Part shown: positions 4,059-70,988 of the stretch, piece by piece
Layout: each line of letters starts with the position of its first letter
Numbering within the stretch: the first letter of the stretch is position 1
NCBI GenBank assembly: GCA_951406725.2
Contig: OX597814.1
Span: 169,280,001-169,404,000 of the forward strand
Length of the DNA stretch: 124,000 bases
Reading direction: 5' to 3'
Source: Octopus vulgaris
Taxonomy: Eukaryota
Notes under the pieces: model-generated
Database searches by the model: none
What the model was told of the DNA's origin: nothing
What the model saw: the letters and a program-made list of their open reading frames with translations, nothing else
Position numbers and translations under genes: made by a program

Positions 4059-4494
4059 GTATATATATATATATATAATAAATAGATGAGTGTATTTTTA
4101 CCTTGTTAACAATTAACATGAAAAAAAAAAAAAAAATAGTTACCAGGGCAGCAAAAATCTCACAAGTAAAGGTGTTGTAACTCCTTGTTTATAAAGGTAG
4201 AAACTTCGTGTTTACGTTGAATATTAATAGCGTTCTGTCAATCGCTATACAAATCCATCATTTTTTGCTAAAGTGTCTTATTCACGAGTTTCGTTTTTTT
4301 CACTTTCCTGAGGAGAAGATTGCATTGTTTATACCATTTATTCTTTTGAATAGTATCAGTGGAATTTCGAAACATATGTCGAAAGTAAAAATATTTGATT
4401 ACACCTGCGTTAAATTCCATTTATTTATTCATATATATATATATATATATTTAGCTGCACTTTTACAATGACTTATATTCATGTGTTATTACTC

Positions 4495-4910
4495 TTTTAC
4501 TCTTACTTGCTTCAGTCATTTGACTGTGGCCATACTGGAGCACTGCCTTTAGTCAAGCAAATCGACCCCAAGACTTATTCTTTGTATGTCTAGTACTTAT
4601 TCTATTGGTCTCTTTTGCCGAACCACTAAGTTACAGGGACATAAACACACAAATATTGGTGGTCAAGCGATGTTGAGGGGACAAACACAGACACACAAAC
4701 ATATACACACATATACATACATATACATATATATATATATATACATATATACAACGAGCTTCTTTCAGTTTCCGTCTTCCAAATCTACTCACAAGACTTT
4801 GGTCAGCCTGAGGCTATAGTGACACTTGCCCAAGGTGCCACGCAGGGGGACTGAACCCAGAACCATGTGGTTCGTAGCAAGCTACTAATCACACAGCCAC
4901 TCCTACACCC
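4495..4910 (-). mobile_element. SINE family A copy (head GGCTGTGTGGTAAG, internal TA tract, GTAAAAGAG tail)
   Basis: Matches the many other copies, e.g. 62930-63314 and 92803-93201. Confidence 0.85.
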
Positions 4911-21800: not shown

Positions 21801-22152
21801 ATACACATTTTCCCTCTGTCTCCTTATTTCTCATTTGATTGTTTTATTTGAAATGGGACTACAATGCGGCTAAATTGCTATCATTACAATATTGTTATTA
21901 CTATTATTTATCCCTGGGATTAGGGTTCATGCTGTTACCCCACTTGTTCTTTCCGCTGAATTCAGTGCCCTTTGTTATGCAGATGGATTCAGTAATTTAT
22001 CCGAGGGACAAAACCTGCAAGTGAATAAATCGCATTTTTTCTAACCTTGCTTACTGATTAAAATGAAAAAGGTTACTCCAAATTTTAATTAAGGTTATTT
22101 AAACTTGAAATATAGTGAAGAGCAGATCAGATCTTTAGAAGTATAGTGACAA

Positions 22153-22193
22153 CTCCAGACATGTTTCAGTCTTGTTAGACCTCATCAGCAAAG
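22153..22193 (-). ncRNA. Minimal type-I hammerhead ribozyme-like motif
   Basis: Minus strand CTTTG-CTGATGA-GGTC-TAACAA-GACT-GAAAC-AT-GTC-TGGAG; helix III palindromic (ACATGT); helix I relies on G-U pairs. Confidence 0.55.
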
Positions 22194-24450
22194 CGTTATC
22201 TAACTATCACTGCAAACCTTAGATGGATAGAGAATGTATATGATTTCTGTGAATGAAAACGGGTACATTCATGGTTGTGTGGTCAAAAAGCCTGCTTCTC
22301 AGCTATGTAGCTTCGGGATGAATCCCATTGTGTGGAACCTGGGGCAAGTGTCTTCTACTTCATCTCCAGGCTGGATTTGGTAGACAGAAACTGAAAGAAG
22401 CCTGTAGTATATATGTATGTTTGTGTGCATGTTTATGTGTGTGTATGTGTGTGTGTGTGTGTGTGTGTGAGAAAGTTAGCATCTCCTTGCTTTGCATGAT
22501 GGTTGTAAATGTGTGTCACTGTTATACAACACTGACATTCATTTCCAATCTTCTTTTCTACTCTAGGCACAAGGCCAAAAATTTTTGGGGAGGAGGCCAG
22601 TCGATTAGATCGACCTCAGTACACAGCTGGTACTTAATTTATTGACCCCAAAAGTATGAAAGGCAAAGTCGACTTCGGCGGCATTTGAACTCATAACATA
22701 AAGACAGCTGAAATACTGATAAACATTTCACCCGGTGTGCTAACGTTTCTTATTTCTTTATTGTCCACAAGGGGCTGAACATAGAGGGGACAAACAAGGA
22801 CAGACAAAAGGATTAAGTCAATTAGATCGACCCCAGTGTGTAACTGGTACTTAATTTATCGACCCCGAAAGGATGAAAAGCAAAGTTGACCTCGGCGGAA
22901 TTTGAACTCAGAATGCAACAGCAGACGAAACACCACTAAGCATTTCGCCCGGCTTGCTAACGTTTCTGCCAGCTTGCCACCTATGCCATGGGGAAATATT
23001 ATCTTACTTGGAAACAGGTGAGGATTAATAAGAAGAGCATCTAGCTACAGAAAATCTGCCTCAACAAATTCCATCTGATCCATGCAGACATAGAAAAGTA
23101 GACATTAAAATCCCTTTACACAAAGCCTGAAACTTGTGCGGGAGGGCTGTCAATTTTATTGACCCCTAAAAGGATGAAAGGCAGAGTCAACCCTGGTAGG
23201 ATTTGAATTCAGAATGTAAGGATGGACGAAATGCCACTAAGCATTTTGCTTGGCATGCTAATGATTCTAACAGCTCGTCACCTTTAAAGTAGATGTTAAA
23301 ATAACGATGATGACAAAGACAATGATGATAATGAACAGAGAGGCATTAGAGATTTTAAAAGTAGCCAGAGCAAAAATACCCTGGGATGCCTATTGAAACC
23401 TCGGCAGCATAGTACAAGCATACTTGTAGCAAGCCAAGAAATTTTGATTAATTAGATATGAAATGCAGTGGAGAATGTGCGTGATCTTTAGCAGTAGATC
23501 ATCATCATCATCGTTTAACGTCCGTTTTCCATGCTAGTATGGGTTGGACGATTTTGAATGAGGGCTGGCACCAGATGGCTGCACCAGGCTCCAGTCTTGA
23601 TCTGGCAGAGTTTCTACAGCTGGATGCTCTTCCTGATGCCAACCACTCTGAGAATGTAGGGGGTGCTTTTTACATGCCACCGGCACGGGGGCCAGTCAGG
23701 CGGTACTGGCAATGACCTCGCTCGAATCTTTTTACACGTGCCAGTGAAGATATAGACTGATAATGGTGATACTGCAAATGAAATCAGATAAGCTATGAGT
23801 GATAAACTGCAATAAAGCTTGTAGACATGTGTCCACATCTACACTGTATCTACTGTTATGTACTGTCACCACTGGTAACTTAAATCTAACACAGTTGACA
23901 GGTCAATAAACAATAGCAGGGAACAACAAAAGCAACTGCAATGAAAAAAGCACCAGCAATGAAATTCACACTTAAACATGTATGTAGACACAGACGCAAA
24001 TATGCGTAAGAGCTGCATTGAAAAGATGCAATACCACTAAAATTACACGCACACACACATACACACACACACATGCACAATACAAACATAATAATCACAT
24101 ATTCACAAATACATACACATATTTGCACACGCAGTCTCTCACCTCCCACCACCATCACTAGTAAGTACACAGAGACCAAACAGAGACTGAAATCAGTCAC
24201 GGAGAAGTCGTTATAAAGGCTGCAGACATAAATTAAAGACTTTGACAAATGAATCAATTAACAAAGATGTGATCTACAACAAATACATGTATTTTTATTG
24301 GCAGAATAATCCTCCTCAAACCTAACAATAACTGTTTCAACATAACGATTTAACATCACGAATCTTGTGACACAAAAAACGCAAAATGCGTAAAGTACAT
24401 GTATGCAAGTTTATAATATATATATACATATTTGAGCAAGCGTGTGCATG

Positions 24451-24738: not shown

Positions 24739-24746
<8 letters not shown>

Positions 24747-25427
24747 AAAGGGCTTAGTAAAATAAATTACTTTGCCACATACTGAACTCATTAGAAATAG
24801 TAGCTAAAAAAACTTTTTTAAAACTATTTCTAATACTTAAAGAAAATCTCTCTCATATAGTGTTTGCTCAACTCAACCCACGAAAGTATGGGGGTAAAGA
24901 CATTAAAAAATCAAATGCAAAGGTTATTTGAGAACGTACGTTTCTAGATTAGTCAACTCGACATTTCTATCATCAGCTCAGAACTCCTTGGTTTGGATTT
25001 GAAAACACTGAAAGTGGGAGCATACCCTTTCGGCTTCTTATCGCTTCTGAAGATCTGCTCGAAACTAACAGTGCCAGCAAACTCAAAGTTTGCTGGCACT
25101 GTTAGTTTCGAGCAGATCTTCAGAAGCGATAAGAAGCCGAAAGGGTATGCTCCCACTTTCAGTGTTTTCAAATCCAAACCAAGGAGTTCTGAGCTGATGA
25201 TAGAAATGTCGAGTTGACTAATCTAGAAACGTACGTTCTCAAATAACCTTTGCATTTGATTTTTTAATGTCTTTACCCACATACTTTCGTGGGTTGAGTT
25301 GAGCAAACACTATATGAGAGAGATTTTTAAGTATTAGAAATAGTTTTAAAAAGTTTTTTTAGCTACTATTTCTAATGAGTTCAGTATGTGGCAAAGTAAT
25401 TTATTTTACTAAGCCCTTTTATATAAT
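24739..25427. repeat. Near-perfect 689-bp palindrome (3-nt loop at 25084-25086) of Penelope-like sequence
   Basis: Arms are reverse complements with few indels; mirror ORFs 24953-25177(-) and 24993-25217(+) are nearly identical. Confidence 0.95.
25190..25241 (+). ncRNA. Minimal type-I hammerhead ribozyme motif (mirror copy at 24929-24980 on minus strand)
   Basis: TGAG-CTGATGA-TAGA..GTC-GAGTT-GAC..TCTA-GAAAC-GTAC-GT-T-CTCA: helix I TGAG/CTCA, intact core, helix II TAGA/TCTA, palindromic helix III ACGTACGT, GUU triplet. Confidence 0.7.
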
Positions 25428-25520
25428 GTAATAATTTGAATTTGCCTTAAATGGTCCCTTTGCATACTGAATACTTGGTGAAATTGATTAATAATTAATT
25501 AATTTTACCCTCAATTGTTG

Positions 25521-69770: not shown

Positions 69771-70216
69771 GGTATGTTAAACGATGTTGATGATGATGAT
69801 AATGATGATGATGACGTATGAGCATTCAGTTTTTGCCAAACATCCTGTATAAATGATTTGTTTATGGTGATCAAGTCTTCATGCCGCACATTAGCTCACT
69901 CTCTCCATCAAATAGACATTAAAATAAACCCATTACCAGTAAAGAAAGTATATGAAAGACTTCCGAGATGAGTTCAATAAATTCACTTGCCGTGGGGAGT
70001 GAAGAATCTAATATTCCTGGCTGTTGCCCACAGCCATGCAACAACCTCTCTTTCTCTGTCTCAGACCAAAGGTTATGCTTCGAATATTTAGGTTTTGAAT
70101 TCTCACAGGAACTCAAAATGTTATGTTAATTCAAGAACAGACTTTTAGGTGATAACTCAAGTTTCCTAATTGTTCTATATTTAAGAGATGAGGAATTATG
70201 TACATTATATGCCCAT

Positions 70217-70495
70217 GGGCATATGGCATAGTGGTTAAGAGTGTGTGCTACTAACACCAAGATTCCGAGTTCAATTCCAAGCAGTGACCTGAACAATAAC
70301 CATAATAATAATAATTATAATAACAATAATAGTAATAACAAGATCAAAAAATACTTTAGAAATAAGGACCCAGGTTTGAAATTTTCCCAAGACACCTGAA
70401 GAAGGCTGAAGGGTATATCAGCTGAAATGTTGTGTTAATAACAAACAAGATGAGGACAAATGTCTGTTGAATGTAAATAATGCAAATAATGTCAA
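70217..70495 (+). mobile_element. tRNA-like head + (AAT)n + hammerhead-bearing tail (SINE/retrozyme-like composite)
   Basis: A box TGGCATAGTGG 70224-70234, B box GAGTTCAATTCC 70267-70278; ACAC-CTGAAGA-A-GGCTGA-AGGGTATA-TCAGCT-GAAATGT-T-GTGT at 70392-70435. Confidence 0.65.
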
Positions 70496-70988
70496 GTTCT
70501 TGAATTTTACTTGAAAGGAAGTTTCTATTTCACTGAAATGAAATAATTTCTGCTGCTTTATTTCAGCATTTTCTGACCAGGATTACTCAAGAAAGCACTA
70601 GATATTCCTCTGGAAAAGTGCATTTTCGAGTAATTATTTTGTGTTTAATTCTATGCTTGCAGTTTTATTGTACTACCAAATCAGATTCCTTGGTAGTAAA
70701 GAGATTCTTGTGGGAAAGGTCAAGAAGTTAAAACATTGATAAACAAGGTTCCTCAAAAGTGAAATGGTTCCAAGAGGCTGTTGTATTCCTTCAGTATGTA
70801 TATATATTCTTTTATTCTTTTACTTGTTTCAGGCATTAGACTGTGGCCATGCTGGGGCACTGTCTTGAATTTTTCAGTCGAATTGACTTCTTTTTTTAAG
70901 CCTAGTACTTATCCTATCAGTCACCGTTGCTGAACCGCTAAGTTATGAGGACATAAACACACCAACACTAGTTGTCAAATGGTGGTGA

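Follow-up and report, generated by a model that had tools for sequence, protein, structure and literature searches.

A dispersed retroposon family of Octopus vulgaris links a tRNA-type promoter head to a minimal hammerhead motif and inserts in a shape typical of Penelope-like elements

Introduction

A short non-coding segment of the Octopus vulgaris genome, at positions 70217-70495 of a 124,000-nt stretch (the window), carries the boxes of an RNA polymerase III (Pol III) promoter and, behind an (AAT)n linker, the parts of a hammerhead ribozyme. The locus raises two questions: do head and hammerhead belong to one mobile element, and which reverse transcriptase (RT) copies it? The initial annotation, made from the letters of the window, proposed a tRNA-headed, self-cleaving short interspersed nuclear element (SINE) or retrozyme that is mobilised by Penelope-like elements (PLEs) and not by long interspersed nuclear elements (LINEs). 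We find that positions 70217-70492 are one decayed copy of a high-copy, non-coding, dispersed retroposon family of ~315 nt, in which head and hammerhead are linked and whose insertions have the shape of PLE insertions.

Earlier work has described minimal hammerhead ribozymes (min-HHRs) that are dispersed by the thousands per genome, and their link to PLEs (Cervera & de la Pena 2014, PMC4209133). The minimal type-I hammerheads of PLEs are also treated in Lunse, Weinberg & Breaker 2017, as cited in PMC7761336. SINEs account for 11.6% of the octopus genome, and the O. vulgaris annotation labels most of them "unclassified" (PMC13282606).

Results

Head and hammerhead form one dispersed family

The genome searched is a 2.8-Gb assembly of 227 contigs, with the window on contig C1. 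A 279-nt query from the locus returned 6,097 first-look candidates, and all 40 of the 40 scored matches were full length and 84-89% identical. From an alignment of 30 copies with their flanks, plus 45 heads, we built a consensus of ~315 nt, which reads (C)GGGCATATGGCGTAGTGGTTAAGAGCGCGGGCTACTAACCCCAAGATTCCGAGTTCGATTCCA[A/G]GCAGTGACCTGAA[C/T]AATAA(TAA)n AACATCGAAAAATACCTTAGGAATGAGAACCCAGGTTCGAAATTTCCCCAAGACACCTGA[T/A]GAAGGCTGGAGGGTATATCAGCCGAAACGTTGTGTTAACAACAAACAAGATGAGGACAAATATCCGTCGAATGT(AAATAATGT)n ACATAATTCCTCATCTCTTAAATATAGAACTGT. From 5' to 3', the unit consists of a head with A and B box, a variable (AAT)n linker, a body with the hammerhead in its 3' half, a hairpin that encloses (AAATAATGT)n, and 30 terminal nucleotides. 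Two subfamilies, with U or A at core position N7, differ at 4 positions only.

The hammerhead half-motif AAGACACCTGANGAAGGCTGG has 9,355 exact matches in the genome and none in the control. The core pattern CTGANGANG-N10-26-CGAAACGTH is found 7,112 times against 22 times in the control, and nearly all genomic matches come from the SINE family and read CTGATGAAGGCTGGAGGGTATATCAGCCGAAACGTT. A 15-mer of the head, a spacer of N85-115 and a 14-mer of the hammerhead occur together in at least 1,015 exact instances genome-wide, with 0 in the control. Among 25 independent copies picked by their hammerhead alone, the head is found in cis in ~15, the linker leaves 4 ambiguous, and all others are 5'-truncated. 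The linkage is thus widespread and the consensus core intact; neither a chance adjacency unique to this locus nor a defective consensus core, the two outcomes that the initial annotation had held to speak against such a family, is found.

The hammerhead has the traits of PLE ribozymes

Hammerheads were searched with a descriptor that consists of CTGANGA, a bulge of at most 1 nt, a helix II of 4 bp or more, GAAA, a palindromic insert as an option, U-H, and a helix I of 4 bp or more. Relaxed, without a requirement for the palindrome, it recovers the window site at 70396. In 200 dinucleotide shuffles, the relaxed form gave a mean of 0.01 matches per 124-kb window on both strands and 0 with a helix II of at least 6 bp, and the strict form, which demands palindromic positions 15.2/16.2, gave 0.005 matches per shuffled window. 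The hammerhead motif at 70396 is real and non-random.

With its CpGs restored, the consensus motif reads GACAC, CUGAUGA, A, GGCUGG-AGGGUAUA-UCAGCC, GAAA, CG, U, U, GUGUU. It passes the strict descriptor with a bulge of 1 nt, a helix II of 6 bp, a CG palindrome and a helix I of 5 bp including one G.U pair, and both helices are present in the minimum free energy fold of the consensus. The core boxes CUGANGA and GAAA stand in correct order and spacing, the former as CUGAUGA or CUGAAGA. The bulged A (70403 in the window) is found in essentially all copies, and the G10.1-C11.1 pair that follows is G-C in the consensus and G.U in the window copy. Downstream of GAAA, the consensus continues with the palindromic 15.2/16.2 nucleotides CG, U16.1 and then H17, where the window copy has decayed to UG. 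The proposal that its GAAATGT descends by CpG decay from GAAACGT is borne out by the family consensus, CAGCCGAAACGTTGTGT.

For metazoan PLE min-HHRs, four traits have been listed that the published descriptor had left unimposed: a short helix I, an unpaired nucleotide between A9 and G10.1, a G10.1-C11.1 pair, and a palindromic 15.2/16.2 without helix III (Cervera & de la Pena 2014, PMC4209133). The SINE consensus shows all four. The likeness to the PLE min-HHRs of PMC4209133 includes the CUGANGA...GAAA core, the helix I length of 4-5 bp, a predicted dimeric fold, thousands of dispersed copies and a position ~70-100 nt from the 3' end. Unlike them, the SINE motif lies in a short non-coding unit with a Pol III-type head and not in the pseudo-long terminal repeat (pLTR) of a coding PLE, and its helix II has 6 bp, compared with the 7-8 bp reported for Schistosoma families. 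Since helix III is lacking and only the palindrome A-CG-U is available, two RNAs would have to form a dimer before this hammerhead could cleave. The predicted cut falls after U17, between U220 and G221 of the consensus. Other min-HHR families of the genome share the same frame with compensated changes in helix II, as in GAGC-GUAG-GCUC and GGAC-CAAC-GUCC.

The promoter head

The consensus A box TGGCGTAGTGG fits TRGCNNAGTGG. It is placed 43 nt from the B box GAGTTCGATTCC, and both are more than 90% conserved across the 45 heads. By eye, only the D arm of the head pairs. The safe wording is a tRNA-type Pol III promoter head. The consensus holds no run of four T residues, so that a Pol III transcript could span the whole unit.

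Insertions are inverted pairs with a one-sided tail

At 34 of 55 independent loci (62%), two copies form an inverted head-to-head pair, always in -/+ order, and many other copies are single arms. The terminal 30 nt (ACATAATTCCTCATCTCTTAAATATAGAACTGT, q286-315) are present at exactly one outer end in 32 of the 34 pairs, and the other arm stops in the tail repeats. The same order dominates among the first 100 listed matches of a hammerhead 21-mer: 14 neighbours lie closer than 1 kb, of which 13 are -/+, one is +/+ and none is +/-. Tandem order is accordingly scarce, with occasional partial tandems at loci L026 and L080. As almost no tandem arrays are found, the label "retrozyme" finds no support.

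The full-length junction CCATATGCCC[RY]GGGCATATGG occurs exactly at 351 loci and not in the control, and one of the 351 junctions, CCCGCGGG, is the presumed undecayed form. The arms are 5'-truncated to varying extent. In many partner arms, nucleotides 1 to 8-26 of the head are joined by microhomology to a 3' segment, and the window copy is of the same kind. Target-site duplications (TSDs) of 8-14 nt surround the whole insertion at 22 of 57 loci, compared with 1.9% in mismatched controls. Because they flank the whole pair, each pair represents one integration event.

PLE insertions have been described with a high rate of 5' truncation, partial tandems, an inverted 5'-truncated copy that abuts the 5' end, and a tail of 30-40 bp at one end only (Craig et al. 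2021, PMC8557442). The SINE pairs are alike in their 5' truncation, inverted 5' partner, one-sided tail and occasional partial tandems. They differ from PLEs (PMC8557442) in the unit of ~315 nt, which holds neither an open reading frame (ORF) nor a pLTR, and in TSDs that are readily seen. As a negative control, we used another tRNA-type SINE family of the same genome (head 20-mer GCAATGGCCCAGTGGTTAGG; locus L075, 1680-1760), which is more abundant with 30,699 exact matches. Among its first 100 listed matches, 0 of 99 neighbour gaps are below 1 kb, and no inverted pairing is observed. As a positive control, coding PLE loci give inverted self-matches, and the first 100 listed matches of the PLE hammerhead pattern include three -/+ pairs at distances of 1.2-1.6 kb. 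This insertion shape, which is typical of PLEs, suggests that those elements, and not LINEs, copy the SINE family.

A hairpin at the 3' end

Near consensus position 238, AAGAUGAGGA pairs with UCCUCAUCU in the terminal extension and forms a 9-bp hairpin around the tail repeats, as calculated with RNAfold. The hairpin module ends in the terminal ..TAAATATAGAACTGT. An older relative of the SINE 3' half, 74% identical, is found at locus L018 (1992-2190, minus strand). It keeps the stem (AGATGAGGA/TCCTCATCT) and the terminal AAATATAGAAYTGTA, and its loop and hammerhead have decayed. We infer from this conserved arrangement that hairpin and terminus may be the module that the RT recognises. The relative at L018 also has an inverted copy of the terminal tail at its 5' side.

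Autonomous PLEs in the same genome

Autonomous, endonuclease-positive (EN+) PLEs are present, abundant and intact in this genome. A search for the GIY-YIG domain (PF01541) gave 5,955 first-look candidates, and in many of them a frame of 781 aa is open. Locus L051 holds an ORF1, as well as a 765-aa ORF with RVT_1 plus, at its C terminus, a GIY-YIG domain, and pLTRs that are 99% identical. In agreement with the earlier statement that PLEs carry similar ribozymes, we detect min-HHRs in 11 of 24 PLE loci (L031-L054). These are of a U3-A8 type, UUGAUAA-GGUUC..GAACC-GAAA-CAUG-U-A/U, and a covariant U3-A8 variant has been described for Schistosoma Cercyon. In L051 they stand, for example, at 279 and 5066, ~70 nt from the pLTR end. 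The U3-A8 pattern has 731 exact genome matches and none in the control. PLE coding fragments were not found in the window or in the SINE loci by tblastn with a PLE RT-EN sequence. The 3' untranslated region of the young L051 element (4300-4700) contains tandem repeats of ~100 nt that are rich in ATTGGTCAAAA..GATGACGTC, with self-matches 4322-4570 / 4414-4673.

The copy in the window

All parts that had been listed for the locus, namely the A and B boxes, the (AAT)n linker and the hammerhead elements, are read at their given positions within 70217-70492. The outer boundaries have to be revised: 70217-70492 is the direct arm, and the whole insertion extends from ~70171 to 70492. The features are, in order:

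70158-70170, no strand: left putative TSD CAAGTTTCCTAAT, identical to 70493-70505 at 10 of 13 positions
70171-70216, minus strand: inverted partner arm, the reverse complement of the ~30-nt 3' terminal extension, one tail repeat and head nucleotides 1-8
70217-70492, plus strand: direct arm, a full-length SINE-like unit without the 30-nt terminal extension, 89.5% identical to the family consensus
70224-70234, plus strand: Pol III A-box-like motif TGGCATAGTGG, read from the sequence
70267-70278, plus strand: Pol III B-box-like motif GAGTTCAATTCC, with the A box 43 nt upstream
70292-70339, plus strand: linker (AAT)n / (AAC)n, whose length differs among copies
70382-70385, plus strand: TTTT run of this copy only (consensus TTTC), which would terminate Pol III upstream of the hammerhead
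70391-70436, plus strand: minimal type-I hammerhead motif, a descriptor match
70391-70395 and 70432-70436, plus strand: 5' and 3' strands of helix I (ACAC 70392-70395 / GTGT 70432-70435)
70396-70402, plus strand: hammerhead core CTGAAGA (CUGAAGA)
70403, plus strand: unpaired (bulged) A
70404-70409 and 70418-70423, plus strand: helix II, 6 bp with a G.U closing pair (GGCTGA / TCAGCT)
70424-70431, plus strand: GAAA (70424-70427), UG (70428-70429, CG in the consensus), U16.1 (70430) and U17 (70431)
Between 70431 and 70432, plus strand: predicted cleavage position
70447-70456, plus strand: 5' strand of the 3' hairpin, AAGATGAGGA, whose partner UCCUCAUCU lies in the terminal extension of complete copies (RNAfold of the consensus 3' region)
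70470-70492, plus strand: tail repeats (AAATAATGY)n, in which the direct arm stops
70493-70505, no strand: right putative TSD CAAGTTCTTGAAT, an imperfect direct repeat of CAAGTTTCCTAAT

The partner arm was located by BLAST of the consensus against the window, where q275-311 matches minus-strand 70208-70172 with 100% identity. The two arms meet in the palindrome ATATGCCCATGGGCATAT at 70207-70224, and the terminal extension is present at the left end only. Loci L010 and L012 have the same partner-arm architecture as 70171-70216. Both CpGs of the window copy are gone. C11.1 has changed to U, giving the G.U pair, and C15.2 has changed to U, which breaks the palindrome. Owing to the TTTT run at 70382-70385, a Pol III transcript of this copy would probably stop before the hammerhead. 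Window positions 70171-70492 are one old, inactive insertion, a dead copy.

Discussion

A model for copying in trans

On the family membership, the linkage of head and hammerhead, the integrity of the consensus motif and the insertion architecture established here, we base a model that we consider probable: a Pol III-headed, hammerhead-bearing, SINE-like family would be copied in trans by PLEs through its 3' module. Pol III would transcribe master copies from the internal promoter over the whole unit, with a transcript start at CGGGCAUAUGG. The 3' hairpin and terminus would then recruit the RT and GIY-YIG endonuclease of autonomous PLEs, on which the family would thus depend. A staggered break at the target would give rise to the TSDs of 8-14 bp. 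One target strand would prime at the true 3' end of the RNA, and the arm made from it would keep the 30-nt extension. The other strand would prime in the tail repeats of a second template, or of the same one, and its arm would come out without the extension. Both cDNAs would be extended toward the RNA 5' ends and joined head-to-head, with truncation and with microhomology or template jumps. The hammerhead would act as a dimer only, be it in processing or in dimerisation of two templates, or it may be a mere passenger.

A bolder version of this model, a "PLE-SINE", makes the hammerhead a required cis module for dimerisation or cleavage, with two SINE RNAs paired via their ACGU palindromes. Two templates would then enter each integration, which would explain head-to-head pairs with a one-sided tail directly. 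We regard this version as speculative and rather unlikely. If it were true, more than 10^4 short insertions would record the integration pathway of PLEs and the in vivo role of min-HHRs.

Several results weigh against the proposed model. Regarding the partner, the PLEs that we sampled use another hammerhead, in which the core is of the U3-A8 form UUGAUAA and the palindrome is CAUG. By BLAST, the SINE consensus shares no sequence with the 24 PLE loci, which represent a sample of PLE families. The SINE hammerhead has only 17 heterogeneous matches in another upstream context, compared with 9,355 matches in total for the half-motif. Tail repeats and TSDs of 8-14 bp also fit target-primed reverse transcription (TPRT) of the LINE type. 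The claim of mobilisation by Penelope-like RTs is supported by an insertion shape that PLEs share and the control SINE lacks, and the failure to find a PLE that shares sequence with the family counts against it.

Regarding the head, ARAGORN calls no tRNA in the window, nor in the CpG-restored consensus head at default settings. No Rfam tRNA match is obtained at E<=10 for the window copy, an intact copy and 18 other copies of the family. Of the tRNA-headed element that had been proposed, the A and B boxes at tRNA-like spacing stand, and descent from a tRNA is supported by neither program.

Regarding the ribozyme, Rfam reports no hammerhead, nor any other family, at the gathering score over the whole window, and no hammerhead at E<=10 in the window copy, the intact copy and the 18 family copies. 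In E-value mode, the window copy, the intact copy and 20 loci gave noise matches only. A likely cause of the hammerhead miss, in our reading and not taken from the models themselves, is that the hammerheads behind these models had a helix III. The 5' ends of truncated arms show no clear pile-up at the predicted cleavage site; 4 of ~35 fall at q223-229, which is not significant. With just 4 differing positions between the subfamilies, covariation within the family lends no support to selection on the ribozyme. In vitro, cleavage by published PLE min-HHRs is poor.

Weighing the alternatives

In a first alternative, the family is a PLE-derived or PLE-dependent SINE whose hammerhead came as a passenger, together with the 3' module, from the pLTR of an ancestral PLE. 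The motif would then have no role in transcription, processing or copying, and its consensus would look intact for no other reason than that neutral decay is slow compared with the age of the family. Such a history agrees with the lack of a constraint signal between subfamilies that are separated by 4 sites, with truncated 5' ends that do not accumulate at the cleavage site and with the low in vitro activity of min-HHRs. Furthermore, cleavage would split the promoter head from the 3' module. PLE clades without hammerhead ribozymes (HHRs) proliferate well, and HHRs may merely parasitise PLEs (Craig et al. 2021, PMC8557442). However, both CpGs and the complete core survive in thousands of copies, so master copies retained the motif throughout amplification. 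The sole core difference between the subfamilies falls on N7, the one free core position, and several unrelated min-HHR families with compensated helix II coexist in the genome. On balance, we find a pure passenger doubtful.

That the family is an ordinary tRNA-type SINE mobilised by LINEs, with inverted pairs from twin priming and a hammerhead-like motif that is a coincidence or a relic, we consider very unlikely. A microsatellite-like tail such as (AAATAATGT)n and TSDs of 8-14 bp are what LINE TPRT typically leaves, and no PLE partner was found in the sample of 24 PLE loci. Yet LINE-mobilised SINEs are not known for inverted pairs at 62% of loci, for a head-to-head junction of such precision or for a 30-nt tail on one side only, and the control SINE family of the same genome is without such architecture. 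Coincidence is opposed by the chance expectation of ~0.005-0.01 motifs per 124 kb and by the PLE-specific traits that the motif carries.

A DNA-level foldback element or miniature inverted-repeat transposable element (MITE) with long terminal inverted repeats is hardly credible: many copies are indeed long inverted repeats with outer ends ..GAACTGTA / TACAGTTC.., reminiscent of Tc1/mariner in that CAGTTC... follows a TA, but the duplications on either side have arbitrary sequence over 8-14 nt and are not TA, the arms are unequal and 5'-truncated, the terminal 30 nt are at one end only, and many copies have a single arm. The Tc1/mariner-like MITE with TA/CAGT ends was rejected, since TSD type and end asymmetry contradict it.

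Relation to known elements

SM-alpha and Sj-alpha of Schistosoma are SINE-like retroposons with a hammerhead (Ferbeyre et al. 1998, as cited in PMC8490949 and PMC4209133). Compared by description, they are likewise short, high-copy, non-coding and SINE-like with a type-I hammerhead, and they belong to another phylum. The hammerhead of SM-alpha is canonical with loop-loop contacts, and the element is often arranged in tandem. To our knowledge, a PLE-type insertion signature has not been described for SM-alpha.

Metazoan non-LTR (non-long terminal repeat) retrozymes are hammerhead-bearing, non-autonomous elements of 150-400 nt for which a dependence on PLEs has been proposed (Cervera & de la Pena 2020; PMC7761336), and a preprint relates retrozyme sequence to PLE pLTRs (bioRxiv 10.64898/2026.07.22.740005). 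Retrozymes form tandem arrays that give circular RNAs and are reportedly promoter-less, whereas the SINE family is dispersed, with one hammerhead per unit and with A and B boxes. Among the octopus SINEs, OR1, OR2 and OK are tRNA-type, and OR1 and OR2 are reported to be CORE-SINEs (Ohshima & Okada 1994, as cited in PMC4824008 and PMC4758252). The SINE family has no evident CORE domain by eye; it is set apart from OR1 and OR2 by description, and it may equal OK or an entry of a repeat library. In the literature, with incomplete coverage and with repeat databases outside it, we found no cephalopod hammerhead-SINE and no SINE with a PLE insertion signature.

By definition, SINEs are parasites of LINEs. 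A very abundant SINE-like family with a PLE ribozyme and a PLE insertion signature would extend this definition. Such a family would moreover account for a large part of the "dispersed" minimal hammerheads reported in animal genomes. Almost all of the ~7,000 fully intact motifs counted here belong to one SINE family. It would also help to classify part of the 11.6% octopus SINE fraction. With ~315 nt, the unit would offer a compact system for the in vivo role of minimal hammerheads, and its thousands of junctions with microhomology jumps could be used to study how inverted and tandem PLE insertions arise.

Other minimal hammerheads

At loci L055, L075 and L079, a hammerhead is found at 1501-1528 in each case, with CUGAUGA-A-GAGC-GUAG-GCUC-GAAA-CG-U-A and relatives. 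These share the bulged A and the CG palindrome with the SINE motif. Between the motif and the element end lie ~110 nt, and (CA)n or (GT)n microsatellites adjoin the elements.

Beyond the site at 70396, the window itself contains three strict min-HHRs. One is placed at 22152-22194 (minus strand) and reads GCUUUG-CUGAUGA-GGUCU-AACA-AGACU-GAAA-CAUG-U-C-UGGAGU, with a GUC site. The 170 nt upstream of it (22270-22440) come from another repeat, for which there are 1,738 first-look candidates, and among the scored matches the hammerhead is not co-repeated with this repeat, nor with the SINE fragment beside it. The other two, at 24929-24980 (minus strand) and 25190-25241 (plus strand), are identical: UGAG-CUGAUGA-UAGA..UCUA-GAAA-CGUACG-U-U-CUCA. 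They lie within a nearly perfect inverted pair of ~690 bp at 24740-25430, with its centre at ~25087 and without a tRNA-like head at that centre. This segment resembles two symmetric, head-to-head copies of a PLE-type 3' end that is 5'-truncated.

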